64,000 nt of DNA from Obrimoposthia wandeli (lineage: Eukaryota), in the NCBI GenBank assembly GCA_977020255.1, contig CDROCS010000586.1:124001-188000 (forward strand). The letters are read 5' to 3'. Numbering within the stretch: the first letter of the stretch is position 1; each line of letters opens with the position of its first letter. A program made the translations under genes and the position numbers. This document shows positions 27,601-64,000 of this stretch, in pieces. The notes below the pieces were generated by a model. That model did no database searches. It worked only from the letters and a program-made list of their open reading frames with translations, and had not been told where the DNA came from.

Positions 27601-29464
27601 TTAATCATTTAAAATATATCAAAAATTCTATTGAGAACAACATTAACCTGAGCGCATCATTTTCGTTTTATCCTTTTACATTGACGACGAGTTACTCTAA
27701 AGTTTTTTGTGGTTTTGAATTATATAACTGAATATTTTTTTTAAAGTTTCAATTCATAGGCTTCTCACATAGACTCTTTGCTAGGAATATTGACAAAGTA
27801 CAAATATCCACGGTTAAGAAAAATTTCCGCATTTCACTAGGTTTATCAACTCCTATTTTGGTTTGATTATAAGAATCAAAAAGTCAGAAATTCAATTTCT
27901 TTTTGTTTCTAGAATTTTAACTTTTACGTGATAATTTTTTGACTGGGTTTAAGGATATTAAAACATGGCTGGAAGAATAAAAGAAGATGTATGAAAGCGT
28001 AAGATATTAAATTTTTTTAGCATCAATGACACCACATTTGAAACTACACATGTGTCAAGAAATATTCAGGTGTCTAGCTAAAGCAATGATAAGATTATAA
28101 CTTCTATATATTTCTAATTCCATTTTACATTTTCTAGGCAGTAAATGAGAAACAAAAATAATTTGTGTAATATTTTGGAACTGTACAGCATCACAAAAAT
28201 ATTTCCCAACCCCATTTTCGTATGAATCTTTACAAGGGAGTTCGGGAGTTCTTTCTGGGTTGTTTTAGCCTAACTCCGAACAAATATTTTCAAATTGTTA
28301 TTTCTTATAGTACATTATCGAATTGTACGACATATTGGCGACCGTCCTTCATATTGCAGCAGAAGCAGCGCGGGGACCAGTAACAGCAGCATCGACAGCA
28401 GCTCCCACATCGACAGCAGCTCCCACATCGACTTGAACGAGACCCAGAGTTCTGACATCTCGGACTACATCGGCGTCGAACAATCCGCCAATGAGGTTAA
28501 TATCATTAGTATAGCACCAATCTCCCAATAGACAGCGGCAAATTTATCCTCGAGGTAATCCAATAATTCTAACTTACGGGTTTTCTGTTTCGGTGTTCAG
28601 TCAGAGAATTGCGGCCATTCTCGACTATTTTACCTTTACTCCAGCTCGTTGTAACGTTTCCTCACTCACGGTTTCTTCATTCAATCTTCCGATTTTGTAC
28701 TCTTTTGTTATTCTTTCTAATTTTATTTTAATTCAATTTTCATCATTTTCATCGTGCTGCTATTTTTTAATATTTTATCATTAACATTTTGTTTCTTGGA
28801 TATTTCAGGAGACACAGACTTTAATTTTGGCATATTCTTTTCATTTTTTCTTCCTTCTCTTTTTTGTGAAATCTTCTGCCCATAAATAATATCCCTTTAT
28901 TCATTTTTATGAGTAATTTCTTCTGCAGTTACTTATATAATTTCCCTCTACTTCACTGCTTTTAATATATTTATTTATTTCTTCATCGTTTTATTCTCCC
29001 ATTTCGTGTTTCCTTGTCATATTTACTTCTTCTAACAGAATGCGGTCAACTCAAGCCCGGTCGTGCGGCCCCGAATATCACCGCAAACCTCAGAAGCGGA
29101 GGGGGGTGTGCACTATCGGGACAGTCGCGAGATCACTGCCTCCCGTCTTCCGCAATCTTCTGGTGCTCGAACAGGCACTCATGTTATGCTGCTGCGTCAC
29201 CGACGTTGCTACGATCCGGCACTTAGGCGCTCCCAGTCGCTGGAGGACTTGCCGGAAGATAACACATTCATCAGCCGCCACCGCCTTAAGCAGCAGGCTC
29301 TACAGTCACCCACTGCCTCTGTCATCAACCCCTACACGTCGCCTTCCACCAAGCTCACCCTCAGACCCTCCAAGAAGGACGTCAAACCATCCAATCTCAC
29401 CAGGGGCCGACAGCCCTCCATCATCATCAAGCAGGCCCGCCCACAAGCACCATCCATCATTTGA
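3567..29464 (+). CDS. FRMD4: FRMD4-like gene (FERM domain + CUPID/DUF3338 domain), multi-exon; 5' exons not resolved
   Basis: Exons 3567-3632, 3689-3746, 10298-10377, 14575-14689, 17480-17813, 19838-20013, 20239-20346, 20392-20505, 21149-21401, 22954-23204, 26816-27075, 28360-28495, 29039-29464(stop). All have AG/GT ends and matching phases. TEKVLRSYEKFSGISSDELMIK-FMHTISELPYQLFHFFPAR and RYTWAEIFNIRHNKNRLNIDIQD resemble FERM F2/F3 of FRMD4A. LCKEESSITGQMPDDY matches the CUPID motif LCLREAELTGKLPVEY. Confidence 0.8.
3689..3746 (+). CDS. FRMD4: FRMD4-like exon, FERM F2/F3 boundary (FMHTISELPYQLFHFFPAR)
   Basis: 56-nt intron upstream; ctttgcag| and |gtaagt; phase 2 to 0; 19 codons, same length as YMSIVESLPTYGVHYYAVK. 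Confidence 0.75.
6783..7212 (+). pseudogene. Tc1/mariner-type transposase relic
   Basis: ELHEEDY and CFQRDGVAAHFVLVVRDFL...RWFG resemble WFQQDGAPPHFA..VRDFL...RWIG. Confidence 0.6.
8130..8480 (+). pseudogene. Tc1/mariner-type transposase relic (N-terminal part)
   Basis: RRFKETGSVDE and LQYDLNKGDPDRRLNFCE patterns. Confidence 0.55.
10298..10377 (+). CDS. FRMD4: FRMD4-like exon, FERM F3 (RYTWAEIFNIRHNKNRLNIDIQDLSH)
   Basis: gtttcag| and |gtgagt; F/Y-x-W-x2-I pattern of the FERM C-lobe; phase 0 to 2. Confidence 0.75.
11222..11434. mobile_element. ~210-bp MITE, copy 1
   Basis: Bounded by its own inverted ATAGTAATTTGTGTTT / AAACACAAATTACTAT; an inverted copy lies at 12902-13121. Confidence 0.65.
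12902..13121. mobile_element. ~210-bp MITE, copy 2 (inverted relative to copy 1)
   Basis: Reverse complement aligns along the whole of 11222-11434 with scattered mismatches. Confidence 0.65.
13830..14319. repeat. 98-bp tandem repeat, exactly 5 near-identical copies
   Basis: Units start at 13830, 13928, 14026, 14124, 14222 (TGCAATATCTGGGAACCC...GCAGTAGTA); I saw one substitution, in copy 5. Confidence 0.95.
14575..14689 (+). CDS. FRMD4: FRMD4-like exon, end of FERM F3 (SSIRRKSSALGLCYELAFPQLAKAVVNLVKDLVVIFTE)
   Basis: ctttacag| and |gttagt; phase 2 to 0, linking the exons at 10377 and 17480. Confidence 0.7.
15978..16306 (+). pseudogene. Tc1-type transposase relic with internal deletion
   Basis: LDFNNIENVWGILSNIIY resembles PDLNPIENVW..L...VY. 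Confidence 0.5.
17480..17813 (+). CDS. FRMD4: FRMD4-like exon, Ser/Asn-rich linker
   Basis: ctttgccag| and |gtaagt; GC-rich island; phase 0 to 1. Confidence 0.75.
19838..20505 (+). CDS. FRMD4: FRMD4-like exons 19838-20013, 20239-20346, 20392-20505 encoding the CUPID (DUF3338) domain
   Basis: Canonical splice sites including a 45-nt intron (20347-20391); EEALVLCKEES|SITGQMPDDYYKL...|DYFEDKKRFILLEIE. Confidence 0.8.
21149..21401 (+). CDS. FRMD4: FRMD4-like exon (ICVLTDSLRQLE..., end of CUPID coil and start of tail)
   Basis: atttgcag| acceptor; donor cag|gtgacg gives phase 1 (an alternative phase-1 donor lies near 21350). Confidence 0.65.
22263..22685. repeat. 109-bp tandem repeat, ~3.7 copies
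   Basis: AAGATGTTCC anchors at 22263, 22372, 22481, 22590; the last copy is internally deleted. Confidence 0.9.
22954..23204 (+). CDS. FRMD4: FRMD4-like exon, low-complexity tail
   Basis: GC-rich open frame; acceptor cccag| is in phase 1 (the upstream acceptor at 22931 is phase 0); donor ttg|gtagga. Confidence 0.6.
24795..25020 (+). mobile_element. L2/CR1-like LINE reverse transcriptase relic
   Basis: IDLSVAFDTVTHEILLKYL, VPQGTIL and HFHRYADGTQ (YADD-like), with frameshifts. Confidence 0.7.
26520..26800 (+). pseudogene. piggyBac-like transposase N-terminal relic
   Basis: Acidic VTDESETEDDDIFDE followed by ILMKYSNKEGKRVY (TN.EG.RV-like). Confidence 0.4.
26816..27075 (+). CDS. FRMD4: FRMD4-like exon, low-complexity tail
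   Basis: tcttgcag| and ctcag|gtgaat; phase 0 to 2. Confidence 0.7.
28360..28495 (+). CDS. FRMD4: FRMD4-like exon, Ser-rich
   Basis: atattgcag| and gag|gttaat; phase 2 to 0. Confidence 0.7.
29039..29464 (+). CDS. FRMD4: FRMD4-like terminal coding exon (NAVNSSPVVRPR...QAPSII*)
   Basis: Long pyrimidine tract with ctaacag| acceptor, phase 0, TGA at 29462-29464; GC-rich 3' UTR follows. Confidence 0.7.
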   Translation, partial: NAVNSSPVVRPRISPQTSEAEGGVHYRDSREITASRLPQSSGARTGTHVMLLRHRRCYDPALRRSQSLEDLPEDNTFISRHRLKQQALQSPTASVINPYTSPSTKLTLRPSKKDVKPSNLTRGRQPSIIIKQARPQAPSII

Positions 29465-30063
29465 CACCAATTCTCGCCTCCCACACGCACATGCAAACCA
29501 TCTGCATACTCTCTTTCCTCCGACACGTACCGTCAAGCCCCTTCATCAATTGACATCGTTTTTCACGACAAAGAGCAACTGCCATGGTATACGCTTGCCC
29601 GATGCCTAGAAACTTTGGGCTTTGTTGAGTTAGCATCTTCATCTGAAATGACAGCTTCTTGATGTGCTTCTAGAGCTCGCAGAGGTTTTGCCTCTTCTTG
29701 GTCGTTGTCGCCTCTGTACATAGGTTGTGACTCCATCGTGCCGTGTAAATAGACTTTGATGCTTCTCTGTGATGTAATGCCCGTCTACACATGCCCGCAC
29801 TCGCGCCCGCAGTCGCCTGCTGTCCGTATTTCTGTCCCCAGTCGGTCGACCTGGCCCCACATTGCCACCTGGTCTGCACTGCCATGTCATACTGTCTACC
29901 GCCTGAGACTTGCTAACCTGACCGAGCTAGCCTGTATTTGTGACTGCTCCCCCTCCCCATCTCCCCAGACTGCGTTGTCAGATTTCCGATTGGGGTTCCG
30001 ATATATGACCAATATCAAAAGTCGACTTGAGTGCTTTCTAATTTGACGCGCATCGTTTAGATT

Positions 30064-46519: not shown

Positions 46520-47817
46520 CAGGGTGCGGAGAAAGTTCCCGATCGAATTTTGAAAATTGAATTAAAGATATTATTATTTAACTAAATTTATCCATTTTTG
46601 GCTTATTTTGTTTGTAGATACATATATTTATATGTTTCAGATCCAAATTTCCAAAAATTTAATTTGCATTTGTTTAAAATGAGTAAACGTGAGGCCATTA
46701 TCCAACTTCATTGCATGGGAAAGACGAACCCATAGATTGTTAAGATCTTAAAAGCTCCAAAATCAACAGTTCGGGATGCAGTAAACCGATACAAAGAACT
46801 TGGGACATCAGACGATCGTCCCAGAAGTGGACGCCCCGAACTGCTCGCACCTCAGCCAAAATAAAGGCCGTTAGGGAGCGAATAAGGAGGAACCCCAAAC
46901 GAAGAATGAAGAAAATGGCCAAGGACTTCAAAGTTGACGAAAAAACTGTCAGAACAATTGTCAAAGATGATCTCAAGTTATCCCCTTTCAAGATGACTAA
47001 CAGACAACAACTGACGGAATTGCAAAAACAGAAGAGGGTCGAAAGAGTCAAGATTCTCCTGAACCGAAAGAAGGATGGCACGGATGCTGGGGTAATTGTC
47101 TTTTCTGATGAAAAAATGTTCACTGTTGAGGCTCAGTTCAACTCGCAGAACGACAGAATTTTAGCTAAGAGTGCTGATAGCATTCCCAGTTCGGTAAAAT
47201 CCGTTTACCGTCGCCAAAAACCTAGCTCGGTAATGGTATGGGCAGCCATCTCTGAGAATTGGAGATCCTCTCTCATTTTTGTTAAAGATGGTGCTAAAGT
47301 TAACGCAAACTCGTACATCCAGGATATTTTGACTCCAGCCCATGTTGAAATGAAGAAACATTTCAAAAATGACCCTTTCACATTCCAACAGGACGGTGCG
47401 CCATCTCACACTGCGAACAAAACTCAGGACTGGTGTGAGAATCACCTTCCAGCTTTCTGGAGGAAGGAATTGTGGCCTCCTTCATCACCTGACTTGAACC
47501 CTCTGGACTTTTGTGTCTGGTCCATCTTGGAGAGAGAGGCCTGTGCTACAGCCCATGATAATACAGAAGCTTTGAAGAAGTCTCTTAAGCGGGAATGGGC
47601 CAAAATTCCCCAGGAATCCTTTCGTGCCGCAGTGAAGAGCTTCAGGGGGAGACTTGAGCGTGTAATTGAAGCCAAAGGCGGCCACATTGAAAAATAGATA
47701 GTATAAATGTTAAATAGAGCTCTAACAAATTGTGTGTGTTATTTTTTGTTTAATTTCAACCTTTATTAGTTGTTAAATTTAACGTTTTATGAGATCGGGG
47801 ACTTTCTCCGCACCCTG
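46520..47817 (+). mobile_element. Full-length Tc1/mariner maT (DD37D) transposon
   Basis: 25-bp TIRs CAGGGTGCGGAGAAAGT(T/C)CCCGATC with one mismatch; TA TSDs at 46518-19 and 47818-19. Confidence 0.93.
46679..47697 (+). pseudogene. maT transposase, disrupted at the 5' end
   Basis: ATG at 46679, TAG at 46733 and a frameshift near 46838. Intact FSDEK, QQDGAPSH and SSPDLNPLD, with 37 residues between the 2nd and 3rd Asp. Confidence 0.88.
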
Positions 47818-50398: not shown

Positions 50399-50529
50399 AA
50401 GCTCGTCGGACACAGCGAATTCACATAGAATAAAACAGCGAATTGAGAATAAGTTATAGAAGAAGAATAAGAAAAGATAAGTTAATTGAGATTAATAATT
50501 TTAATAAGTAAGTAAATCGAATAAATTTG

Positions 50530-50805
50530 TAAATCGAGTTGATAAGTTTCTCGAAGTAATTAATTTAAATAAGTGTTTAAATCGAGTTGATCCTCGAAGT
50601 AAGTAATTTGAATAAGTTTGTAAATCGAGTTGATCCGTTCCTCGAAGTAAGTAATTTGAATAAGTTTATAAATCGAGTTGATAAGTTCCCCAAAGTAAGT
50701 AATTTGAATAAATTTCGTAAATCATGTTGTTAAGTTCCTCAAAGAGATAAATTGAATAAGTTTAATAAATCGAGTAGATAAGTTCTCCAAAGAGATAAAT
50801 TGAGA
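50530..50805. repeat. ~48-bp tandem repeat (~6 diverged copies) in the 5' leader of element H
   Basis: AAATCG anchors at 50531, 50579, 50622, 50670, 50719, 50767. Confidence 0.8.
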
Positions 50806-52157
50806 GAGAAATTCATAAAATAATAGTTGAGAAATAAGAGATAAAAGTAATAAATAAATAGAAGTCGTAAGAAGTAAGCAATTACATACTTGATAAGACG
50901 ACGGTTAGTCAAATAGAACTCACGTTTAAATTTGAATTAGTTTTGAATTTTAGTTTTGAATTGACTGACTTGTTTGGTGAAGTAAACCAAGAAGAAATTG
51001 AAGTTATTGAAGTTGCGAATCAAGGAGATATTGAAATTGCAAATTCAGAGAAAATTAAGGAAATTGATTTGAAGAATTTTGAAGAAATAGTTGAAAATAT
51101 GGCTAACGCAAATAATAATGCAGAAAATAATGTAGATAATATTAATACAGAACAGTTGGCACAAGTTTTGAATGCGACGTTTAAACCCAACTTTACCGGA
51201 TCTCTGCAGATCGCAAAGTTTAAAGGAGACGAGGAAAGTATTTTGTGACTTCCTGGCGGAATATTCGAGTTGCGCAGATGTGCAAGGATAGAACGAAAGA
51301 GAAAAATGTGTCCGCGTACATGCGCATTTGACAGGATTAGCACTTAAAGTGTATAAACACATAATAAAAGCAGAACGTGAAGATTAGGAAACATTGGAAA
51401 AATGCTTTTATAGGAAAATTGGTGTTGTAAGATTTAGCAAACGTGAATAAACGAATTTTGAGAGAACATAAATAGAAACATAACAAGAGAGTGAATGAAT
51501 ACATGAATGCATCTGTTGGGGTTTCTATACGAAACTTGGTATAGATCCTCTTGAATGCGGAGGGCCCCAACGTGAGTTCGATTAGAAGCAGGTCTTAAAG
51601 TTGGTCGTGGCCTACTTAGTTTTATGGTTGCCTAATCTCTTGTACTATCTGAAGGTATTTGATTTGATGTCTCTTATTCTGAAGGGTGCAAAAACAACTT
51701 GTTCTAATGTAGGAAATTGTTTATTTGTAATTCACGAACTAAAACACAACAATACGTTTATGTACGTATTTTCTAAAAAGTATAGTAAAAATTCCTAAGA
51801 CTTCTGTAAGTCTCTACAACAAGTGGGGATGAACCACGTATCGATTTTATGTTAAGGGTGATCGAGTTTTTAGAGTCGTTCCTCTAACTCGCGAATAAGC
51901 TCAAGTTAAGATTTTCAATTTAATGTGACTCTTATGTCAAACTCTAACTTTAATTCCCAATTTAACTTTAATGGCAAACTTTTATCTTTATACCAAAACT
52001 ATGGCAATTTAGACAAAACTTCTCTTCAAACTTTTATGTCAATTTAGACAAAAACTTCTCTTCAAACTTTTATGTCAATTTAGACAAAAACTTCTCTTCA
52101 AACTTTTATGTCAATTTAGACAAATTAGACAAATTGTAATGTCAACTTTATGACAAT

Positions 52158-52408
52158 TTTAAAGGAAAAAACTTCTTTTATTTACTTCAAATTCTGTCCA
52201 ACTTTATAATGACTTTAAGGGAAAAAACTTCTTTTATTTACTTCAAATTCTGTCCAACTTTATGATAACTTTAAGGGAAAAAACTTCTTTTATTTACTTC
52301 AAATTCTGTCCAACTTTATGATAACTTTAAGGGAAAAAACTTCTTTTATTTACTTCAAATTCTGTCCAACTTTATGATAACTTTAAGGGAAAAAACTTCT
52401 TTTATTTA
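52158..52408. repeat. 56-bp tandem array (~4.5 copies) inside the solo LTR; preceded by ~3 copies of the 35/36-bp unit (52009-52125)
   Basis: TTTAAGGGAAAAAACTTC anchors at 52158, 52214, 52270, 52326, 52382. Confidence 0.9.
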
Positions 52409-52705
52409 TCTTCGTCGCGTCTCACCTATTTGAACCGATGGATATATGTTGGATTGTCTGCGCGAGCACGAGTTGTCCGGAGAATCACGGTCTGAGCGAG
52501 TACGATTTGTCTGCTAGCGATCTCTCCTTAGCTGGTTAGGTTCCTCGCTGTAGCTCGGCGGGGATAAATTTGATCGTCTCGCTGTGGCTCGGTGGGGATT
52601 CCTGATTCGATCCGCTGTGTGGATTGTAGAGTTGGCTGGAGATACTGCTCACTGTATAATAGTTTGCTCTATCTGATTAGAGACTGCTCGTCTAGCTTGG
52701 GTTTT

Positions 52706-52915
52706 GAGAGCGATCTGATTAGAGAGTTGCCGATTTCTAGCTTGTGTTTTGAGAGCGATCTGATTAGAGAGTTGCCGATTTTAGCTTGTGTTTTGAGAGC
52801 GATCTGATTAGAGAGTTGCCGATTTCTAGCTTGTGTTTTGAGAGCGATCTGATTAGAGAGTTGCCGATTTCTAGCTTGTGTTTTGAGAGCGATCTGATTA
52901 GAGAGTTGCCGATTG
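52706..52915. repeat. 45-bp tandem array (~5 copies) inside the solo LTR
   Basis: Unit GAGAGCGATCTGATTAGAGAGTTGCCGATTTCTAGCTTGTGTTTT. Confidence 0.9.
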
Positions 52916-53879
52916 CTTTTTTCCCGTTCTGTTGCTGGATTATCAATTATTACTCAATTGTATGAGTTCTTACCGGAGTTTCTTCTTTGCTCGGATATGC
53001 GTCTGTCGCAACAATGATTTCCCTTTTCTTTTTTGTGTAGTCGGTGTGTTGGTGACTTATATAGTCAATTTCCAATCAGCAATGTCGGGCAGCTGAAATA
53101 TATTTCCTGAGCCCTGAGCGTAATTCCTGACAGCTGAAAAATTCAATTAATTCACGGCACGAAAATGTGCTTACCGTTTCCTTGATTGACGTTTTTCTTT
53201 CTGCTGACGTTAGCAGATTCTAAATTATTCCCGTTTTGCTTTTGCTTAGTTAGTTTGTTGCACTTTTGGGTTAATTAATTTAACTTATATATATCTTACA
53301 CTATACACGACCTTCGTGGTCCTCCTAATTTTTACCCTAAATTCCACTAATTTCAATTCTAAAACTAAAATTATTATTTTAATTTAATTTTCAACCTTGC
53401 TTTCAAGGATTTTTTATTTTAGTATTTAATCGAAAAAATATTTAAATTTCTTAATTCTCAAACCTAACACATCCAAGAAAAATATTGAGAACTCCTGCTG
53501 GCGAACCTGTAGCAGCAGCTGTACAATTAATAGAAGATAATCTGAATCAAGGCGAAATGGCAGAGGTACTGTTAGATATATTTAGAGGTGAACTGTAAAA
53601 AGATACTAAAGTATTATTGTCAGTATCAAATATAAATGGTTTTGACAACACCGTGCGAAAGGCGAGAGAAATTGAGTAGAATATAAAGAATAATGTAGCG
53701 TTAGCAATTTACGTAGTGATGACAAATGATGATGATAAGACAAAGGTTTTTGTAAATAAGACAGAACCAAGTAATTTTCAAAATCAGAATTATGGACAAA
53801 AAGAGTCTAGAGACATAAATAAGTTCGAGAAAAGAAATGAATTTAGTAATGAAAATAAAGGTAGAAATAGCGACGATTT

Positions 53880-54700
53880 GAGAAATAAGGAAATCATAAG
53901 AACTAAGTTGGCATTAGCTATTACGAATCCAGACATGGTGGCACCACTATTGCTTCTAGACGAAGAAATATTTGCTAAATCAATGGGATAAGTAATGTAT
54001 ACGTACAGGGATAAAAAAGTACTGGTAAAATTGAGAGAAACAACTCGATGTACAAGTGAATTACCAGTAACATATAACTTAAAACCACTTTTTGTAGAAC
54101 CAATATCAAGGATGATACTTCCTATTGACACTCCATCTAAGGAGATAAGTTGCTCTAATATAATGGCACCTGAATATAGATTATTGAGAGACTTATGGAT
54201 AATATTACCTGACCGTAAGCGAACAGGAACTCCAGAGAGAATAAAAATGACGACACCCTAAGAAAAATGGAGTTCAAAGCTGTAACGAATATTGAAAGTG
54301 CAGGTTTATATAATTAGAAAAATCTAAAAGCGGCCTGGAATGAAATAATGTTTCCAGTAAGAAGGGCCAGAGTACTAACGGAAATGGTACATCGTGCATT
54401 ACCACCAAGAGCTACATATGCGAATTTTGATATGATATTGTCGGCAAGTCATTTCAAGGAAGTGGCACATCAGACACTTAGGAAAATGTGGGGAAAATTC
54501 TTTGTATTAAGACAATTTTTAAAGTATAATAGGAATTTTTGATATAATTATATTTGTACAGGTAATTATAGCTCAGGTGTTGTCCACATATAGTTTGTAC
54601 AGGATAACTGGAATCACCTGGCAGCTTATAATTGGATATTTTTTCTATTTCTAGCAAAATATCTAATGCACCATCGTCACGAAAATGAATTGCGAGCTCT
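53880..54700 (+). pseudogene. env: C-terminal half of a chuvirus-like (class III, gB-like) envelope glycoprotein
   Basis: KLALAITNPD...G*VMY...VKLRETTRCTSELPVTYN...FVEPISRMI...EISCS..APEY...IMFPVRRARVL...MWGKF, then hydrophobic IGIFDIIIFVQVIIAQVLSTYSLYRITGITWQL. Motif order matches chuvirus-type G from memory; stops and frameshifts present. Confidence 0.7.
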
Positions 54701-55033
54701 CAAGAAGGAGCAACATCAAACTAGAACTAGAACCGTCGAGACGACAATGACGACGATAATGATAGTTTGGGAGACTATGCGAAGATACCAAAAACAGGGC
54801 ATCCAAAAATTCCACTGTAAAACAAGGAAGAACCAGTACCAAATCTTTATCCAATGAAGAAACTAAAGGAAGAAAAAGAAAAGTTCAAAAGAGGAATTTT
54901 AATGATAAGATGGCCTAGAGTGAACTATAATAAGCTTCTATAGGAAAAAGAGAAAAAAGATAATTCCAGAAGAATTCTGAAGTCTAGGATATCTAATGAG
55001 AATCCGAATGCTCCACCACAAGTAGCAGTAACA

Positions 55034-55330
55034 ATGAACGGAAGAGAATATATTTCCGAGGTCGATACTGGATCTGCAGTATCAGTACTGAGTAAAGAAA
55101 TCTTGTCATCAAAAGAACTAGAAAAAGTGTGTCATAGGAAAAAAACATTTGTCAACGTAAATAGAACATATGTAGTATCAGAAGGAATACTGAAATGTAA
55201 ATTAACTATTGATGGAAGAGAACTGCTGCTAAATGCAAGAATATTCACCTATTGTGGTAGTCCAGTCATGATTGGAATGGATGTGATACGAATGTTCGAA
55301 GGAATAATAATATTAATAAACAACAAGAGT
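55034..55330 (+). pseudogene. Retropepsin (A2 aspartic protease) of element H
   Basis: VTMNGREYISEVDTGSAVSVLS and VMIGMDVI motifs. Confidence 0.85.
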
Positions 55331-56619
55331 ACTAAGAACAACAATTCAGTGAGAGAGATAAAGATGCTGGGAAGACCTATGAATGAAGGAAAAGACATAA
55401 CTAGTTTCAAGATAGAAAACTCGTACCGAAACAAGACATAGGAAGTGCTAGTGAATTCGATACTTCACTACAAAGGAGTAAATAGCGGACACAAGTGATC
55501 TTTATTGATTGCTTCTTTTTAGAGAGGTTGGATAAAAGGAAGAGAGAAACTAGTCCACAGAAAAGGAAAATTACTCAGTTGTTGTTGGTTGTAAAATCGT
55601 CAAGCGTGAAAAGAATCCCAGTCGACACAAATATTCAGAAGTAAATCTAGGTAAGAACCCCTTAGTTAAGTAGCGTCTATTTAATGTCTACTTTCTAAAA
55701 AAATTAGAGAAGAAGAAAAGGTGGTGAATTATCTATTATCGAGAAAATCGTATAAAAGGAAAATTATACAAGAAGAAATTGACTGACTCTTTCTAGGAAA
55801 TTATAGAAGAAAATTGCTTGACTCTAAAATTCGAAACAAGCAAACATCTCTCTAAAAAGGTAAGCAAAGGACGCAAACCAAAACCACTAAAATAATCAAG
55901 AAACTTTCACAGAATACTCATTGCGACAGAAGGCAATCGGATCGGCCAAATTTGAGGAGGAGTCGTGACAAGGATATCTAGACGCCGGAATCTCAACGGA
56001 AGAGAATCCTGGACTCTGTAGACCTACCGGAAAGTTAATCATCATATTTAGAGAGATGTGAGTTGTTGTGGAAAAGATATCTTTAGAATTGTTGTTCACA
56101 CAAGTGATTTGTAATTTTTATCATTTTGTTGGGGTTTCTATACGAAACTTGGTACAGATCCTCTTGAGTGCGGAGGGCCCCAACGTGAGTTCGATTAGAA
56201 GCAGGTCTTAAAGTTGGTCGTGGCCTACTTAGTGTTATGGTTGCCTATCTCTTGTACTATCTGAAGGTATTTGATTTGATGTCTCTTATTCTGAAGGGTG
56301 CAAAAACAACTTGTTCTAATGTAGGAAATTGTTTATTTGTAATTCACGAAACTAAAACACAACAATACGTTTATGTACGTATTTTCTAAAAAGTATAGTA
56401 AAAATTCCTAAGACTTCTGTAAGTCTCTACAACAAGTGGGGATGAACCACGTATCGATTTTATGTTAAGGGTGATCGAGTTTTTAGAGTCGTTCCTCTAA
56501 CTCGCGAATAAGCTCAAGTTATAGATTTTCAAATTACTGTGACTTTTATGTCAAACTCTAACTTTAATTCCCAATTTAACTTTAATGGTAAACTTTTATC
56601 TTTATACCAAAACTATGGC

Positions 56620-57365
56620 AATTTAGACAAAACTTCTCTTCAAACTTTTATGGCAATTTAGACAAAAACTTCTCTTCAAACTTTTATGGCAATTTAGACA
56701 AAAACTTCTCTTCAAACTTTTATGGCAATTTAGACAAAAACTTCTCTTCAAACTTTTATGGCAATTTAGACAAAAACTTCTCTTCAAACTTTTATGGCAA
56801 TTTAGACAAAAACTTCTCTTCAAACTTTTATGGCAATTTAGACAAAAACTTCTCTTCAAACTTTTATGGCAATTTAGACAAAAACTTCTCTTCAAACTTT
56901 TATGGCAATTTTAGACAAAACTTCTCTTCAAACTTTTATGGCAATTTAGACAAAAACTTCTCTTCAAACTTTTATGTCAATTTAGACAAAACTTCTCTTC
57001 AAACTTTTATGGCAATTTAGACAAAAACTTCTCTTCAAACTTTTATGTCAATTTAGACAAAACTTCTCTTCAAACTTTTATGGCAATTTAGACAAAAACT
57101 TCTCTTCAAACTTTTATGGCAATTTAGACAAAAACTTCTCTTCAAACTTTTATGGCAATTTAGACAAAAACTTCTCTTCAAACTTTTATGGCAATTTAGA
57201 CAAAAACTTCTCTTCAAACTTTTATGTCAATTTAGACAAAACTTCTCTTCAAACTTTTATGGCAATTTAGACAAAAACTTCTCTTCAAACTTTTATGGCA
57301 ATTTAGACAAAAACTTCTCTTCAAACTTTTATGGCAATTTAGACAAAAACTTCTCTTCAAACTTT
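56620..57365. repeat. 35/36-bp tandem array (~21 copies) inside the 3' LTR
   Basis: Unit TTTAGACAAAA(A)CTTCTCTTCAAACTTTTATG(G/T)CAA. Confidence 0.95.
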
Positions 57366-57366
57366 A

Positions 57367-57620
57367 TGACAACTTTAGGACAATTTAGACAATTTTAGTG
57401 TCAAACTTTATGACAACTTTAGGACAATTTAGACAATTTTAGTGTCAAACTTTATGACAACTTTAGGACAATTTAGACAATTTTAGTGTCAAACTTTATG
57501 ACAACTTTAGGACAATTTAGACAATTTTAGTGTCAAACTTTATGACAACTTTAGGACAATTTAGACAATTTTAGTGTCAAACTTTATGACAACTTTAGGA
57601 CAATTGAGACAAATTTTAGT
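57367..57620. repeat. 44-bp tandem array (~5.6 copies) inside the 3' LTR
   Basis: TGACAACTTTAGGACAATTTAGACAATTTTAGTGTCAAACTTTA at 57367, 57411, 57455, 57499, 57543, 57587. Confidence 0.95.
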
Positions 57621-58755
57621 AATCTCTCTTACGTTTTTTGTCTCGAGGTTGAGATATCCTGAAGCGTTCCGGAATATACTGAGATCGAACACAAAAACCG
57701 ATCGGCTGACTGAATTTGAATTGCCGAATGAAAATTCGCTGATATAGTGCTGACTGGAACAACAATTGAACTGGTTCACAAGCTCTGCTCCGTGATAGAT
57801 CGAGTTCGGTTGAATAGAATCGATTTGTATGTCGCTGTTACGACGTTGCCCAAATCCGTGATAGATTGATCTTTAAGTCTTGTGTGACGAAACGTGAGAA
57901 TTTCCCAATCAGTTAGTTTGCTAAATCAATAATTAAATCTCCAAGTCTATCACAAAACCACCTGGTTGCTGCTAGGGACAATGTTGGTTTTCCTTGGTTT
58001 TTTGTGGTCTATTTCTCGGTAGATTGGGATATTGCTTTTTCCGGTTGTGTATTTCGTTTTCTTGTCGACGACTTTTATAGTCGATTCTGCAACTCCTGTC
58101 TGTCAGTCAGCAATGTCGACAGCGGTTTCAACTGGAGTCTTTTGCGGCAGCTGAAAATTAAGTTTAAACACTCCAATTTAACTGCACGAAAATGTGCTTA
58201 CCTTGATTGACGTTCGATTTTGATTGACGTTCGATATTGTTCCCTTTTTTCTTCTTTGCTTAGTTAATGTGTCTTTTTGTTGCACTTTTGGGTTAATTAA
58301 TCTAACTTTTATACATTTCACATTATACACGACCTTCGTGGTCCTCCTAATTTTTACCCTAAATTCCACTAATTTCAATTCTAAAACTAAAATTAATATT
58401 TAATTTAATTTTCAACCTTGCCCTCAAGGATTTTCATTTTAGTATTTAATCGACTAAAATATTTAAATTTCTTAATTCTCAAACCTAACATACCTCGGGG
58501 GTTCCAAAAAAGTTACGTCCCCGGAACGTATCGATTTTACTTAAACAAGCCTCTGGCTGTTGATTTTAGGTTCATCCCTACAAAATCAATCATTCAACTT
58601 CAACAAACATGCCCAAAACAAAATTTCTCAAAATCCCGGTTTTTAGTGGGAAACATAATGTATAATTTGGAGCAAGTCTCAGACTATACATTATTATCTA
58701 TACACAAAACTACATGCATAACCAAGGATTAGGAAGGAAAGAAGGGAGGAAAGGG

Positions 58756-59286
58756 TCAATTGTCATAAGTTAGGTCAATTGTAATTGTCGGCTGGTTCCG
58801 ACTGGCCAGGTAGCGCAGAACCTGCTCCAGGGGTAGGTCGGGAAAGGACGGACTGTCCCCGTTGTACAGGTGTAGTTGTTGGCTCCGGGTTAGGTGTGGG
58901 CTCTCGACAAACAGGTCGAAATACTGCCCGTTCATCGCGTGATTTTCTATCCAGAGACGTCTGGCCTGGAACCACGAGTGGCAGTCTCGACTAGACCGCC
59001 ATCTCTCGCGGATGCCCAGTTGTGTGTCGCGCCGGCGTGCGAGACATACGTAGCATTGGCAATGTATGCCACCAATGCAGCTGGCAGGCGATCGGGTGCC
59101 CTTGTGCCTTCCACGGCTCTGGAGCGTCCATTTGCCAAAGGGTGTCCGGCACAGTGGACATGTGATATGGCCGGGGGGTCGAGCCTTGGCCCACAAATAG
59201 AGGCACTCCTCGTGGAATTTGTGACGGCAGCCGACAGGGGATGCTGATACCGCCCAAATCTTCTCCATGCATACAGAGCACTTCAT
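58756..59286 (-). CDS. RING-H2 E3 ligase-like ORF C (RING + C-x5-CxC-x2-C + C-terminal SIM-like ITIDLT)
   Basis: CSVC-x13-CRHKFHEEC-LYLW...CPLC; acceptor ttattttcttatgcag directly abuts the ATG at 59286. Confidence 0.88.
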   Translation of the reverse strand: MKCSVCMEKIWAVSASPVGCRHKFHEECLYLWAKARPPGHITCPLCRTPFGKWTLQSRGRHKGTRSPASCIGGIHCQCYVCLARRRDTQLGIRERWRSSRDCHSWFQARRLWIENHAMNGQYFDLFVESPHLTRSQQLHLYNGDSPSFPDLPLEQVLRYLASRNQPTITIDLTYDN

Positions 59287-59626
59287 CTGCATAAGAAAAT
59301 AACTCCTTTCAATTTGGGGTTCACCGTTCTCATCGTTAATTTAAATTTTATTTCAAAACGAATCCTTAGTTATCTAATCCTACCGAGTTTTGTTTCGATT
59401 TTAGGCATGTTTACGCATTCACACTAAGCATAAAAAATTGTCTTTTTAGAAATTCAGTATAATAATTACAATTTCAGTTAAACATCATACATAAAAATGG
59501 TAATGGTCAATTTACAGTTCACAAGATTATATAATTATGATTACAATTATGGTAGCTAATTTATCGCGGTATGCGATACACAGGGTAGTTCATGATGTCA
59601 CGTTCAAGTCAGAAAGTTACCTTCGA

Positions 59627-59932
59627 TTATTGTTGGGAATTGGGCTGGCCTGTGCTTCGCTCCTCCACGCAGAACGAGCACCAGCAATCGCAGATGGTTT
59701 TCCAGCAGTGTACGATGGGTACCACTGCTTGGAGGCTGTCTTGGTTGTACACGTAGTGTACTGAGAAGGTCGCTCTGCACATCGGGCAGGTTGGGAAGTC
59801 GAGGGGATTGTTGCTGTTTGCGATGGGGATCCACGTCTCGAGGCATTCGACGTGGAAAAGGTGGTCGCAGTTGTTGGGCTTGGTGTAGAAGTCCACGATG
59901 CCCTCGTAGCAGATGGAACATTCTCCAGACAT
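59627..59932 (-). CDS. RING-H2 E3 ligase-like ORF B (RING + C-x6-CWC-x2-C)
   Basis: CSIC-x13-CDHLFHVEC-LETW...CPMC; acceptor ccctcccacag 2 nt before the ATG. Confidence 0.88.
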   Translation of the reverse strand: MSGECSICYEGIVDFYTKPNNCDHLFHVECLETWIPIANSNNPLDFPTCPMCRATFSVHYVYNQDSLQAVVPIVHCWKTICDCWCSFCVEERSTGQPNSQQ

Positions 59933-59992
59933 TACTGTGGGAGGGTTGATGTTGAATTTGGGCTCGATTGAGGACTGGTGGTTGTGTGATGT

Positions 59993-60292
59993 TTACACAA
60001 AAGTGGTCTGATTTTGTCGATCTGACAAACAGTAATAACACCAACACTCTCCGAAATTCTTCCAACAGAATACCACCTGTACATATACATCTTCTTGGTT
60101 GGTTTCTAACATGATGAATCTTGCGAATTGTCTTCTGCATACAGGGCAACAAGGGTATGTTGGATGTCCGAACTGTCCATAAGTTCTGATCCATGTCGAT
60201 AAACATTCCTCGTGGTGTAAATGGTTGCAGGTTTCGGGTCTTGTTCTTCGTTCGGTTAGATCTTCCAAACATATTGGGCATTCTTCGGACAT
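59993..60292 (-). CDS. RING-H2 E3 ligase-like ORF A (RING + C-x6-CWC-x2-C)
   Basis: MSEECPIC-x13-CNHLHHEEC-LSTW...CPVC; acceptor tgtatttag 1 nt before the ATG at 60292. Confidence 0.88.
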   Translation of the reverse strand: MSEECPICLEDLTERRTRPETCNHLHHEECLSTWIRTYGQFGHPTYPCCPVCRRQFARFIMLETNQEDVYVQVVFCWKNFGECWCYYCLSDRQNQTTFV

Positions 60293-60415
60293 TCTAAATA
60301 CATGATGATGATTAATTTCTACATGAGTTTTATATATTTCTACTATTTGTACAATCACTTCTAGATATTTCTACATATTTCACACACTAATTTATCTACA
60401 ACCTCCTCTGACTCA

Positions 60416-63400
60416 TCATATCTTGATGGGAGGCGGAGGTAAGGGTCGCAATTCCACTTCCTCCATGGTGGGTGTGTCACAGCATCGCAATCCTTCGCAT
60501 TTTCGTCGTATTCCTGGGCATACTTGACTGCCTTTTACGCACACGATTGTCAATAAAACCACTGCTGTTGACACTACGGCCATTCCAATTAGGGCATTGA
60601 CCGCTGTTATTCCGCTGTCTGATGATTTATAATCGTACTTCATTTTGTTGTTTGTCGGTTCGAATGACATTTCCATGGGTTTTGATCGGTTTCCATGTAT
60701 TATGTCCGATTTTCTAAAAATTCGGGGATTTGGGTGTTTTGTTTCTGATGGAACAGGTATTATTATTTTGGATTGGAAATGATGTTTGGGATCTAGTGGG
60801 ATCGTTCCCTGCACTCTTGTCCTCTTATTAATTGTACTTTTGTTTCTGGGATTTAGCTCTTTTTCTTTCGCTTCTGTCTTTGTTCTGATCACTGTCTGGT
60901 TTTTGGAATGGCGTTTACTTTCGATTACCTTTGCCTTCTTTTTGACTAGGATTGGTCTTTTGGGAATGATTTTCCTGGGTTTGATACTTATACCGGATTT
61001 ACGAAATCGACGGTTCTGGTATCTTAGAGTTATGTAGAATATTTCACCTGTTATTATCATGATTATGGTCGAGGTCTCTGTAGTATTACTGGCAATTCGA
61101 TTACACAGACATTCTGTGTTAAAATGTGGTACTAACATTTGGCTTTGGATTTCGAATCTGATTCCGCCATCTGGGTTGGGACACATTACTGTCACCCTGT
61201 CAGTTTCTAACAATCTGAAAAATATTCTAACGGAATTCCATACGGTTTTACGTCGTCTGCCTGTGATCATAATCCTGTCGACAATTTTCCAGATGCGCTC
61301 ATCTCTAGGCAATATTAATGACTTTGTTCGGATACTTTGGATAATCCGCTTCCTCTTTGATATTGTTATCCGTAGGTATAACACTCTTTCATGATACAAT
61401 AATATTAAATTGTAAACGGGTGTATTTTGGTCGATTTTTATTCTGACCTGTCGGATGACATACAATTTCTGATCGATATTGTCAGTTGCTGACGTCTGTA
61501 GATGAATGTCTACTACGTGATTTGTTTTTAGTAGGGGGATTTCTATGTATACTGCCCGTATTACGTCTTGTCTCCATTTACTGATCATGATCTCATAACT
61601 AGCCTTGGTAGTGGTGATTTGTATGATCAGCATGATTCCTATGATCGTTCGATTCCTAAACTCAGGAACTTCAATGAAACAAGTCAAATTACTCATATAG
61701 TACGGTCTTTCCTCGATGTGTTCATATATCGTTGGCTGGTATTCTGGTGCTGGTTCATCTAGAAATGGTGGACTTGGTATAATTGTGTTGAAATTTTGTA
61801 AGTTCATTTGACCTGTTCGTCTTGCGAGATCATGCCGTTTCTTTTTTGATCTCAACTCTAACTTTGTACAACAAAACAAGATGAGCAATATTAATATTAT
61901 AAATCCAATGATCAGTGCGAGTATTGGATTAACCAATTCTAGAATACCGTAACGTACTGCTGGTATTCCTTTACTCTTGATGGTTAATATTTTAAATTTG
62001 TGTGCACTTTGGTTGGACATGTCACTGAGAAGCACTATTTTAGTTTGTCCAAATATGTAGTCTTCACATGTGACAACACTAACTCCATAATGTCCATTAA
62101 GTGTTATCATTTCGGTCGCTGGGACTATACACATTCGTCCTGGACATCCTTTTACACACATGATCATCACGGCTCTACTGTGGGATGTCTTGATTATTTC
62201 TAGGGTGTTGTCTAGATTTCTCAAATGTAAATTATATTCGGATAGTGTCATCAATTCGGCTTTACTGGTTGGCATGGCTTGCAGTACCAATCCAATTACT
62301 ACTCCATAGATCAATCCTTGTACAACGGTGCACAGGGCCTTGACCGACCTTTTGCAAAGGGTTTTAATTATCAATCGTTTGAGAGATATCTGTTTCTGAT
62401 TGGATCGTTTTGTTGTCTGTCGTTGTTTTGACATCTCCTCGATTCCATCTCTTCCGATAATCAACTGTACCGGTTTACCTTGTATCATCAACTTTCCGAA
62501 TCCATTTTTGGCGGACAAGCATGTTTTATGTCCTTCCATCGTTTCAATTATCACTCTCTTACTTCCATACTCACGTGTTTTGATGACATCGCCGTCGAAT
62601 ATATACGTTGGTCCTTTTGTATCAGCATCTTTTTGTATTTCCTTTACAACTCGTTTTCTTCGCTTGCATCCGGCGAATGTTGTTGATATTTGGTCAAGTG
62701 TGCGTTGTCGGTCAGCTTCGTAATCTATCCGAAATTGATTCAGTATTCTGTTTTGTGGGTAAAATATCGCTTCATTTACTATGTTGTCTTCGATCCTTTC
62801 GTCTAGATACACAAGCACTTTGTTCGTTGGTCCATTTGGTCTTTTCATCTTTACAAACTGAAATCTTTTACTGTCGGTTCTCATAGATCGAAGACATTTT
62901 CGGATGATCCACACATCAATTAGTCCTAACAATACTAATAACATCATCAGTGCCGGCGTATGGTACTGTATGGTGTAGTTGTGGATTTCGTTGAACCAGG
63001 AACTATTTCCGTGGTTGGAGCCTATCTCCTGTGCTCCCGTTATCGGCATTAAACAACTTAACAAGCCTATCGCTAGCAATCTTTGGTATTGAAAGCTGGG
63101 CACTGTTGTTGTAGCTTCATTTGTTTCTCGTTGTTGTTTCCTCTTTTCGGTGTATTTCTCTATTTCTCGAACGAGTAACGGTTTGAATTCCGTATTTGGT
63201 CTATTCTGTTTGATGTAGACCATCGCTTCCTCTGGCGTGTGACCATGGTACTCTACCAACAAGGATACACCTATGGTAGGCGCTAACATTGTACCTTTTT
63301 TCTGATATATCAGAACGCCGTTTCCTTCTGTGACTTCGGCTTGGATGGTTTGAGTCAATTTCGTCAGATGTTGTTGTGCATCGTTTATTTCTCGATTGGA

Positions 63401-64000
63401 AGCATGTATGTATCGAGTGGTGTCATCTTCAGTATTTTGACACAGACTAATTATCTCGTTTCCGACTTCAACAATGTTGATTACTCGGTTGATACTGTGG
63501 AACTTTAATCCAGCAGTATCTATATCTCCTGGATGACATAAAAATACTTTTGGCATTATCTGTGTAATTTTATCGACTCCGGCTAAAAATAACCCGGTTA
63601 ATGATAATGCTTGGAGGAAATTCTTTTCCTTTGGGTCCTCAGGAATGTCGTCCATCCGTCTTTGTTCTTGCAACAGAAGTTGGTAATTTGCCAACTGTCC
63701 CAAAAAATTAAGATTTGGGTTTGCAATACTTCTTCTCTCCTGTAGGTATTTTAGCGCTTCTAGTACCTGCATTCGTCTAGTCTTTATTAGGTATGCTAAT
63801 ACTAGAGTTGCTGATCGAGAAATTCCTTTCTGACAATGTACCAACACTTTTCCTCGGTTCCGGAGTTCTCTGTGAAGTATTTCGTTTGTTTCTACGAACC
63901 ATTCGAGAAGATTAGCGTCCATTGAGTCTTTTACTCTTAATGTCATAGCTCTGATTGTCTGATATTGTGATTTGTGATTCATTGTAACGTTGATCACGTA
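60416..64000 (-). CDS. C-terminal >1193 aa of a retroelement-borne polyprotein: dual-specificity phosphatase, pseudo-phosphatase, three signal peptide/TM modules; open past the window edge
   Basis: Uninterrupted frame (TAC at 64000-63998 is in frame). VHCQKGISRSATLVLAYL at 63838-63812; a second DSP fold at aa ~144-283; alternating signal-like and TM segments. Lies between the window edge and the 3' LTR. Confidence 0.9.
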   Translation of the reverse strand, partial: YVINVTMNHKSQYQTIRAMTLRVKDSMDANLLEWFVETNEILHRELRNRGKVLVHCQKGISRSATLVLAYLIKTRRMQVLEALKYLQERRSIANPNLNFLGQLANYQLLLQEQRRMDDIPEDPKEKNFLQALSLTGLFLAGVDKITQIMPKVFLCHPGDIDTAGLKFHSINRVINIVEVGNEIISLCQNTEDDTTRYIHASNREINDAQQHLTKLTQTIQAEVTEGNGVLIYQKKGTMLAPTIGVSLLVEYHGHTPEEAMVYIKQNRPNTEFKPLLVREIEKYTEKRKQQRETNEATTTVPSFQYQRLLAIGLLSCLMPITGAQEIGSNHGNSSWFNEIHNYTIQYHTPALMMLLVLLGLIDVWIIRKCLRSMRTDSKRFQFVKMKRPNGPTNKVLVYLDERIEDNIVNEAIFYPQNRILNQFRIDYEADRQRTLDQISTTFAGCKRRKRVVKEIQKDADTKGPTYIFDGDVIKTREYGSKRVIIETMEGHKTCLSAKNGFGKLMIQGKPVQLIIGRDGIEEMSKQRQTTKRSNQKQISLKRLIIKTLCKRSVKALCTVVQGLIYGVVIGLVLQAMPTSKAELMTLSEYNLHLRNLDNTLEIIKTSHSRAVMIMCVKGCPGRMCIVPATEMITLNGHYGVSVVTCEDYIFGQTKIVLLSDMSNQSAHKFKILTIKSKGIPAVRYGILELVNPILALIIGFIILILLILFCCTKLELRSKKKRHDLARRTGQMNLQNFNTIIPSPPFLDEPAPEYQPTIYEHIEERPYYMSNLTCFIEVPEFRNRTIIGIMLIIQITTTKASYEIMISKWRQDVIRAVYIEIPLLKTNHVVDIHLQTSATDNIDQKLYVIRQVRIKIDQNTPVYNLILLYHERVLYLRITISKRKRIIQSIRTKSLILPRDERIWKIVDRIMITGRRRKTVWNSVRIFFRLLETDRVTVMCPNPDGGIRFEIQSQMLVPHFNTECLCNRIASNTTETSTIIMIITGEIFYITLRYQNRRFRKSGISIKPRKIIPKRPILVKKKAKVIESKRHSKNQTVIRTKTEAKEKELNPRNKSTINKRTRVQGTIPLDPKHHFQSKIIIPVPSETKHPNPRIFRKSDIIHGNRSKPMEMSFEPTNNKMKYDYKSSDSGITAVNALIGMAVVSTAVVLLTIVCVKGSQVCPGIRRKCEGLRCCDTPTMEEVELRPLPPPPIKI

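Follow-up and report, generated by a model that had tools for sequence, protein, structure and literature searches.

A candidate cargo block of phosphatase, orphan membrane and RING-H2 reading frames beside a long terminal repeat in Obrimoposthia wandeli

The giant Ty3/gypsy elements of dugesiid planarians, Burro and GYPSM1, were reportedly described by Jurka in 2007 and by Grohme et al. in 2018. Besides an internal env and accessory open reading frames (ORFs), Burro/GYPSM1 elements carry Smc, MATH_TRAF, BIR, ankyrin, BCL2-like, Ubi/SUMO and dUTPase domains (PMC6431247). The position of env between gag and pol, upstream of the protease gene (PR), is a published peculiarity of the planarian Burro elements, and the giant long terminal repeat (LTR) elements of planarians are suspected of ‘tinkering’ with the apoptosis and ubiquitin pathways of their hosts (PMC6431247). 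The locus compared with them here lies at the right end of a 64,000-nucleotide stretch of Obrimoposthia wandeli DNA (assembly GCA_977020255.1, contig CDROCS010000586.1, positions 124,001 to 188,000 of the forward strand), which is referred to as the window and to whose first base all positions refer. It comprises an LTR and, beside it, 5.5 kb of coding DNA on the minus strand, the cassette, with reading frames for a tandem phosphatase fused to an orphan membrane polyprotein and for three small RING-H2 proteins. The right end of the window is read here as the cargo end of a minus-strand LTR retroelement to which both cassette and LTR would belong; whether the two do form one element is, in our judgement, evenly balanced.

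Coding content of the cassette

The original prediction, made by a model from the letters of the window alone, described 5.5 kb of stop-free, co-oriented coding DNA lacking any gag/pol motif, adjoining a 2.4-kb LTR and surrounded by decayed ORFs of transposable elements. Much of this description was borne out. The dual-specificity phosphatase (DSP), the dead DSP, the membrane modules and the three RING-H2 ORFs were all recovered in place on the minus strand by Pfam profiles, catalytic residues and hydropathy, and a Pfam scan of the 5.5 kb finds no gag/pol motif. The coding DNA is indeed co-oriented and intact, but it is not a single stop-free tract: it comprises four ORFs, each closed by its own stop. 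The spacers between them measure 123, 60 and ~335 nt, and a further 265 nt lead from the last stop, that of RING3, to the LTR. The LTR itself is confirmed as a 2364-bp TG...CA repeat, shown to be genuine by a solo copy with a CATC duplication, and the neighbouring transposable-element ORFs are decayed as claimed (a frameshifted and truncated env-PR remnant and one DDE_3 remnant). The signals used as search patterns in this work, i.e. AATAAA, a TATA pattern, a pyrimidine tract followed by AG, the TGG start of a primer-binding site, the T-loop consensus of transfer RNAs, example polypurine tracts and the phosphatase signature C-X5-R, are generic textbook ones.

The long ORF (60416..64000, minus strand) has 1194 codons plus a stop and codes for a tandem phosphatase with a membrane polyprotein behind it. 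Its frame runs without stops through 60419-64000, ends at the stop 60416-60418 and is open at the right edge of the window, its 5' end lying beyond. It is intact and free of introns over 3.6 kb. Between 34 and 119 stops are found in each of the remaining five frames of 60419-64000, against none in the frame of the ORF. The possibility that so long a frame arose by chance on a T-poor strand is ruled out by shuffling, since the longest ORF in 500 shuffled sequences reached 192 codons. With this contrast in stops, and with Pfam domains scoring well above their cut-offs, the long ORF and the cassette are real coding sequence.

The N-terminal part of the long ORF matches the Pfam family DSPc (PF00782) in two stretches (E value 1.2e-35; 122.7 bits against a cut-off of 33.5). 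DSP domain 1 (63626..64000, minus strand; ORF residues 1-125) covers positions 21-131 of the 133 of the profile, so that ~20 N-terminal profile positions lie outside the window. It retains, in invariant columns of the alignment, the general-acid aspartate D25 and the signature H55-C56-X5-R62, and its closest relatives in the Protein Data Bank (PDB) are mitogen-activated protein (MAP) kinase phosphatases (MKPs), namely DUSP10 (2.5e-19) and DUSP4 (4e-19). Judged by its residues, domain 1 is an MKP-type phosphatase with an intact active site. DSP domain 2 (63131..63625, minus strand; residues 126-290) corresponds to the second DSPc stretch; when aligned to DUSP28 and 2hcm (E 8e-4) it has glutamine Q233 in place of the catalytic cysteine and leucine L239 in place of the arginine, and is on these substitutions predicted to be a catalytically dead pseudo-phosphatase. 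Among database proteins, the top matches of the phosphatase part are metazoan DUSPs with ~40% identity over the core, and some of them are tandem proteins of the DUSP13/27 type that cover 89% of the query. An AlphaFold2 model built from an alignment of 22 sequences folds both DSP domains, with a mean predicted local distance difference test score (pLDDT) of 80.4.

The original prediction also regarded the cassette as ‘virus-style’ and compared its phosphatase with vaccinia VH1 and baculovirus PTP and its RING ligases with HSV-1 ICP0. Searched against BFVD, the phosphatase model does match phosphatases of giant viruses or other nucleocytoviricota, iridoviruses, entomopoxviruses and baculoviruses with a probability of 1.0, at E values of ~1e-6 and 22-32% identity. 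Since the cellular MKPs are matched at ~1e-19 with ~40% identity, the enzyme is by these comparisons nearer to cellular MKPs than to any viral phosphatase, and its viral likeness is one of fold. The shared fold is thus what stands of the comparison with VH1 and PTP, and a closer relationship does not. A viral origin of the set as a whole is not borne out either: viral phosphatases, at ~30% identity, are outdone by cellular ones, and the RING domains, too, best match cellular RING-H2 ligases.

The remaining ~900 residues of the long ORF (291-1194) contain four strongly hydrophobic segments (348-366, 555-573, 693-711 and 1137-1155) and two further signal-like stretches (309-325 and 781-797), i.e. 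six hydrophobic segments in total. As read from the sequence, a small-x-Ala site closes each of the stretches 309-325, 555-573 and 781-797. Together these features fit three predicted modules, each composed of a signal peptide, an ectodomain and a transmembrane (TM) anchor, as judged by hydropathy and the small-x-Ala sites. Module 1 (62351..63130, minus strand; residues 291-550) has the signal-like stretch 309-325, a short loop with two NxS/T sites, the TM segment 348-366 and a basic tail. Module 2 (61676..62350, minus strand; residues 551-775) begins with the signal-like or TM segment 555-573, continues with a cysteine-containing loop of ~120 aa and the TM segment 693-711, followed by CC and KKKR, and ends in a Pro/Tyr-rich tail. 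Module 3 (60419..61675, minus strand; residues 776-1194) consists of the signal-like stretch 781-797, a loop of ~340 aa with a K/R-rich end, the TM segment 1137-1155 and a Cys/Pro-rich tail; the loop appears beta-rich in the secondary structure of a single-sequence AlphaFold2 model, of pLDDT 36. At that value the model of the membrane part is not usable for its fold. The topology derived from the six segments is self-consistent: the phosphatases would be cytosolic, the NxS/T sites fall in predicted lumenal loops and basic residues follow each return to the cytosol. The hydropathy profile suggests that the membrane part could be one six-span protein or, after cleavage by signal peptidase, three type-I proteins.

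This membrane part is an orphan in every collection searched. Its 904 aa gave no match in an exhaustive HMMER search of 1.84e9 representative proteins; no Pfam family scored above threshold, the PDB search returned chance matches only, and scans of IMG/VR and of the JGI metagenomes by protein and DNA pattern revealed no relative. Homology to a known fusion or attachment glycoprotein was likewise absent from Pfam, the PDB, the representative library, IMG/VR and the metagenomes. A word-indexed search with the whole long ORF found no match, and the three modules show no mutual similarity in an internal comparison. Two candidate motifs were considered and rejected: a WBP-1 or PY-motif likeness of module 2, which is sub-threshold (E 0.044), and a furin site at KRRKR, which falls within a predicted cytosolic stretch.

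Downstream of the long ORF lie the three small ORFs, all on the minus strand. RING1 (59993..60292; 99 aa) carries its RING-H2 domain at the extreme N-terminus and a cluster of four cysteines at the C-terminus. RING2 (59627..59932; 101 aa) is its paralogue with 38% identity. RING3 (58756..59292; 178 aa, or 176 from the second ATG) has the RING-H2 domain, the four-cysteine cluster and an 85-aa tail without recognised nature. They score 36.8, 36.6 and 31.2 bits, respectively, with the Pfam profile zf-RING_2 (cut-off 27.3) and, by their ligand pattern and profile, are predicted to be RING-H2 E3 ligases. Pairwise identities among the three are 38, 28 and 30%. All eight RING ligands, in the pattern C3H2C3, and the four C-terminal cysteines are nevertheless invariant in 3/3 paralogues, and just 11 other columns are. 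The preservation of 12 zinc-ligand columns despite 28-38% identity argues for constraint on these ORFs since the RING duplications. The best PDB matches of the RING profile are generic cellular RING-H2 ligases (EL5, RNF126, RNF38 and synoviolin), with an equine herpesvirus RING at rank 14 (E 7.6e-4). No full-length relative was found in a word-indexed search with the RING profile, and scans of metagenomes and IMG/VR yielded nothing or generic RING domains only. One IMG/VR contig (L001) encodes at 10001-10366, on the plus strand, a protein of 121 aa with a RING at its N-terminus, and the first nine residues of that RING equal those of RING1; this is generic RING likeness only, because the same pattern served to select the match. 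A further ORF of 225 aa (59604-60281, minus strand) overlaps RING1 and RING2 in another frame; it is featureless and probably a by-product of the T-poor, GC-richer strand.

The starts of these ORFs share a feature of possible relevance to their expression. In 3/3 cases a start codon stands 0-2 nt behind a pyrimidine tract and AG: the ATG of RING1 follows such a site by 1 nt, that of RING2 follows CCCTCCCACAG by 2 nt and the second ATG of RING3 stands directly behind TTCTTATGCAG. The same arrangement precedes 3.4% of the ATGs of the window and 1/36 in-frame ATGs of the long ORF. We read these sites as putative splice acceptors, which would fit either subgenomic mRNAs of the retroviral style or the spliced-leader trans-splicing that is part of flatworm biology. 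Base composition differs along the cassette. The GC content of third codon positions (GC3) is 0.35-0.41 for the long ORF and RING1 (0.39 for RING1), compared with 0.76 for RING2, 0.65 for RING3 and 0.32 for the surrounding genome; the high values of RING2 and RING3 may be the mark of a recent import. The spacer between these two ORFs (59293..59626) is AT-rich, with 30% GC and one AATAAA on the cassette strand, and the 265 untranslated nt that lead from the RING3 stop to the LTR (58491..58755, minus strand) contain neither AATAAA nor a polypurine tract.

The LTR family and the case for one element

The window holds two copies of the LTR, both in minus orientation, which begin with TGTTGGGG and finish with CCTAACA. 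Copy A (51514-53469) is 1956 bp long and is flanked on both sides by the 4-bp duplication CATC, at 51510-51513 and 53470-53473, so that with its target-site duplication it spans 51510..53473. It is a solo LTR with its own target-site duplication. Copy B (56127..58490) is the 2364-bp LTR beside the cassette, read here as the 3' LTR of the element that bears it. Identity between the two copies is 98% in the left 610 bp and 84% in the right 320 bp, and their internal tandem arrays differ, copy A having 36-, 56- and 45-mers and copy B a 36-mer repeated 21.5 times and a 44-mer repeated 6 times. The TG...CA ends, together with the perfect CATC duplication of copy A, establish the repeat as a genuine LTR inserted by an integrase. 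The flanks of copy B, ATTT and TACC, match neither each other nor the outer flank of copy A; A and B thus do not make up a pair, and copy B, with no matching duplication, must be the terminal LTR of a longer element unless it has been rearranged. AATAAA and TATA-like motifs are confined in both copies to the minus strand, which is the cassette strand; in copy B they lie at 56337 (AATAAA, ~210 nt from the LTR end) and at 58313 and 58079 (TATA-like).

Between the two copies, 0.7 kb from LTR B, lies a broken Burro-like remnant on the plus strand (53992..55438). It consists of an env-like piece resembling the fusion glycoprotein of Monjiviricetes (PF24664; 1.3e-11 and 4e-4), followed by a retropepsin-like piece (gag-asp_proteas 4e-4; Peptidase_A3 4e-4). 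The pieces lie in three reading frames, which implies at least two frameshifts, in addition to stops; the remnant is truncated at either end, env lacks its N-terminal part, and reverse transcriptase (RT), RNase H and integrase are absent from 53992-55438. The remnant is older sequence that received two insertions of the LTR family, and the genome probably carries Burro-like elements of the planarian type.

The view that the cassette and LTR B form one element draws support from several observations. The co-oriented cassette is the only coherent gene content on the far side of LTR B, and the stretch from the RING3 stop to the LTR is free of AATAAA, one being present inside the LTR on the cassette strand. 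The neighbouring env-then-PR remnant agrees with the published Burro architecture, and all three RING start codons stand behind acceptor-like sites. The cassette is, moreover, compact, intron-free and intact next to a broken env-PR remnant. A number of findings weigh on the other side. Because the core genes lie beyond the window, the link is not proven: a Pfam scan of the visible 5.5 kb turns up none of gag, PR, RT, RNase H and integrase, and what lies upstream, with the second LTR and the predicted ATTT duplication, falls outside. A polypurine tract is missing next to the LTR on the cassette strand, where the 34 nt before the LTR are ~50% purine and contain no purine run. The argument from motif orientation is statistically weak, as chance alone would give an LTR of this length and base composition ~3 AATAAA per strand, and the acceptor reading of the RING start sites is drawn from sequence. 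GC3 is strongly uneven within the cassette (0.35-0.41 versus 0.65-0.76), and this internal break hints at a mosaic origin. Lastly, no further copy emerged from protein, IMG/VR, JGI metagenome or exact-sequence look-ups, and the window itself contains no second copy of the cassette by internal comparison.

It is unlikely that the cassette is unrelated DNA (a fragment of another mobile element or of an integrated DNA virus, or a recently imported block of genes) abutting a truncated or rearranged LTR, copy B then being what is left of an element broken by deletion or recombination. The lack of a polypurine tract and of gag/pol in view would agree with that, the composition of RING2 and RING3 is alien to the genome, tight gene spacing with AT-rich spacers would also suit a DNA-virus-like organisation, and the region is a nest of insertions containing the solo LTR, the env-PR remnant and the DDE_3 remnant. 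Yet no viral relative stands out for any protein of the cassette: cellular phosphatases are closer than viral ones, and for the membrane part IMG/VR, searches related to BFVD and the 1.84e9 proteins gave no match; the orientation signals of the LTR agree with the cassette strand, and the pattern of splice acceptors suits a retroviral or flatworm mRNA strategy. The affinity of the phosphatase and RING domains to cellular families leads to a further proposal, namely that these are host genes: an intronless, possibly retro-copied or domesticated, gene for a membrane-anchored phosphatase and a tandem RING family beside transposon debris. Their intactness among decayed transposon ORFs and the retained ligands of the three RING paralogues would agree with it. 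We nonetheless consider it improbable, given that an ORF of 3.6 kb without introns and a run of four ORFs in one orientation, spaced by 60-335 nt, are, on general knowledge, atypical of an intron-rich animal genome, that no orthologue was found in any annotated proteome searched and that the block ends 265 nt from the LTR with no polyadenylation signal of its own.

The direct orientation of copies A and B, 4.6 kb apart with the plus-strand retroelement env-PR remnant between them, could also be taken to mean that they bound a single small element on the plus strand (51514-58490) as its LTRs, with the cassette outside it on the opposite strand. This is very improbable indeed. Copy A has a perfect CATC/CATC duplication of its own while the outer flanks of the supposed pair, CATC and TACC, do not match, and on this evidence the pairing was rejected; in addition, no TGG resembling a primer-binding site stands beside A, B is not preceded by a purine tract, the AATAAA and TATA-like motifs run antisense to env-PR in either copy, being on the minus strand, and the right 320 bp are 84% identical against 98% for the left 610 bp.

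If cassette and LTR B are one element, the right end of the window would hold the 3'-terminal part, at least 7.9 kb, of a minus-strand, endogenous-retrovirus-like LTR retroelement in a planarian-type, Burro-bearing genome. The cargo block would follow upstream genes situated beyond the window, presumably gag/pol. Its first product would be a large protein with a cytosolic N-terminus comprising a predicted active MKP-type phosphatase and its dead copy, this pair being anchored to, or cleaved from, ~900 residues that would cross the membrane six times, and signal-peptidase-like sites could release three type-I membrane proteins. As the RING ATGs stand directly behind acceptor-like sites, each RING paralogue is probably translated from a cis- or trans-spliced subgenomic mRNA of its own, and the AATAAA within the 3' LTR would mark the end of the transcripts. 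Tethered to the membrane and paired with a dead partner that traps substrates, the MKP-type phosphatase would damp host MAP kinase or stress signalling at membranes, RING-H2 proteins would ubiquitinate host factors to the benefit of the element, and the orphan lumenal domains could be its surface or secretory-pathway proteins. We infer such a counter-defence role purely from the predicted activities. More tentative than the unity of the locus, and doubtful at present, is a broader interpretation of the cassette as the separately spliced accessory block, in the style of complex retroviruses, of a planarian endogenous retrovirus lineage. It would then contain the first protein phosphatase encoded by a retroelement (MKP-type plus pseudo-phosphatase, on an orphan six-span polyprotein) and three RING-H2 paralogues, two of them with a foreign GC3 that would indicate a recent origin in some other host or element.

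The remainder of the window

Outside the right end, Pfam scans of 147 ORF pieces yielded one DDE_3 domain only. It belongs to a stop-free piece of 317 codons (46744-47694, plus strand) and is a transposase domain of the Tc1/mariner type (E 7.7e-7), the sole other recognisable protein domain within the first 47.7 kb. Neither Rfam nor tRNA scans of the window gave a match. A GC-rich island at 28000-30000 (GC 0.445 compared with ~0.31; GC skew -0.22) contains a Pro/Ser-rich stop-free frame of 222 codons (28941-29606, plus strand) without a Pfam match. A pair of 182-nt inverted repeats (11258-11439 and 12898-13079), 92% complementary and separated by 1458 nt, could be the termini of a small DNA transposon. 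Tandem arrays are present at 13731-14416 (98-nt units, 99-100% identical to each other), 22263-22643 (109-nt units) and 50506-50785 (48-nt units).

Comparison with known systems

If the cassette belongs to an element of the Burro/GYPSM1 kind, the cargo known from such elements widens to MAP-kinase-type phosphatase signalling, orphan membrane proteins and RING ligases that are expressed separately. It would then also suggest that an invertebrate element is expressed through splicing in the manner of complex retroviruses, and would supply sequence-defined candidates for the interaction of an abundant retroelement with the stem-cell-rich, PIWI-guarded tissues of planarians. Should cassette and LTR turn out to be unrelated, the cassette remains a cluster of intact orphan genes whose composition is foreign.

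Among cellular proteins, the nearest to the phosphatase are the MKPs DUSP10, DUSP4 and DUSP1, which are its best matches and with which domain 1 shares C-X5-R and the general-acid aspartate, and the dead second domain recalls STYX and the tandem proteins of the DUSP13/27 type. It differs from cellular DUSPs in an identity of ~40% over the core and in its fusion to a polytopic membrane region of ~900 aa that has no counterpart in them; a MAP-kinase-docking region, if any, would lie outside the window. The phosphatases and RING proteins of large DNA viruses share the fold, but their matches are weaker than the cellular ones and no viral protein is a top named match. Plant Ogre elements are alike in their large LTRs and extra ORFs; they belong to a different kingdom and carry no related cargo, and the likeness is conceptual only.

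In organisation, the locus resembles complex retroviruses and the foamy-like endogenous retroviruses of fish (general knowledge; PMC6431247), in which small accessory ORFs stand between the main genes and the 3' LTR, behind acceptor-like sites, with polyadenylation in the LTR. Its gene content differs from theirs, the arrangement is in this case known from the letters of one window, and the flatworm setting also allows for spliced-leader trans-splicing. The closest described counterparts by setting are the Burro/GYPSM1 elements. As in these, an LTR element is found in an AT-rich genome (~30% GC), with kilobase-sized LTRs and tandem repeats, and the host-type domains of the cassette are linked to ubiquitination, as those of Burro, with its accessory ORFs, are linked to ubiquitination and apoptosis. 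The order env-then-PR typical of Burro is seen only in the neighbouring plus-strand remnant, 0.7 kb from the LTR. None of the described Burro domains occurs in the visible 5.5 kb; in Burro they lie upstream of pol, so their absence here does not exclude membership. Conversely, a dual-specificity phosphatase, a membrane polyprotein and separate 3' RING-H2 ORFs are all missing from the described Burro set. In the literature searched, which did not cover Repbase or Grohme et al. 2018, there is no description of an LTR element bearing a phosphatase, or of such a membrane polyprotein or 3' RING ORFs in one. The concept of host-derived cargo in planarian LTR elements is already established; the combination of phosphatase, membrane protein and RING ligases would, provided that cassette and LTR are one element, be new to it.

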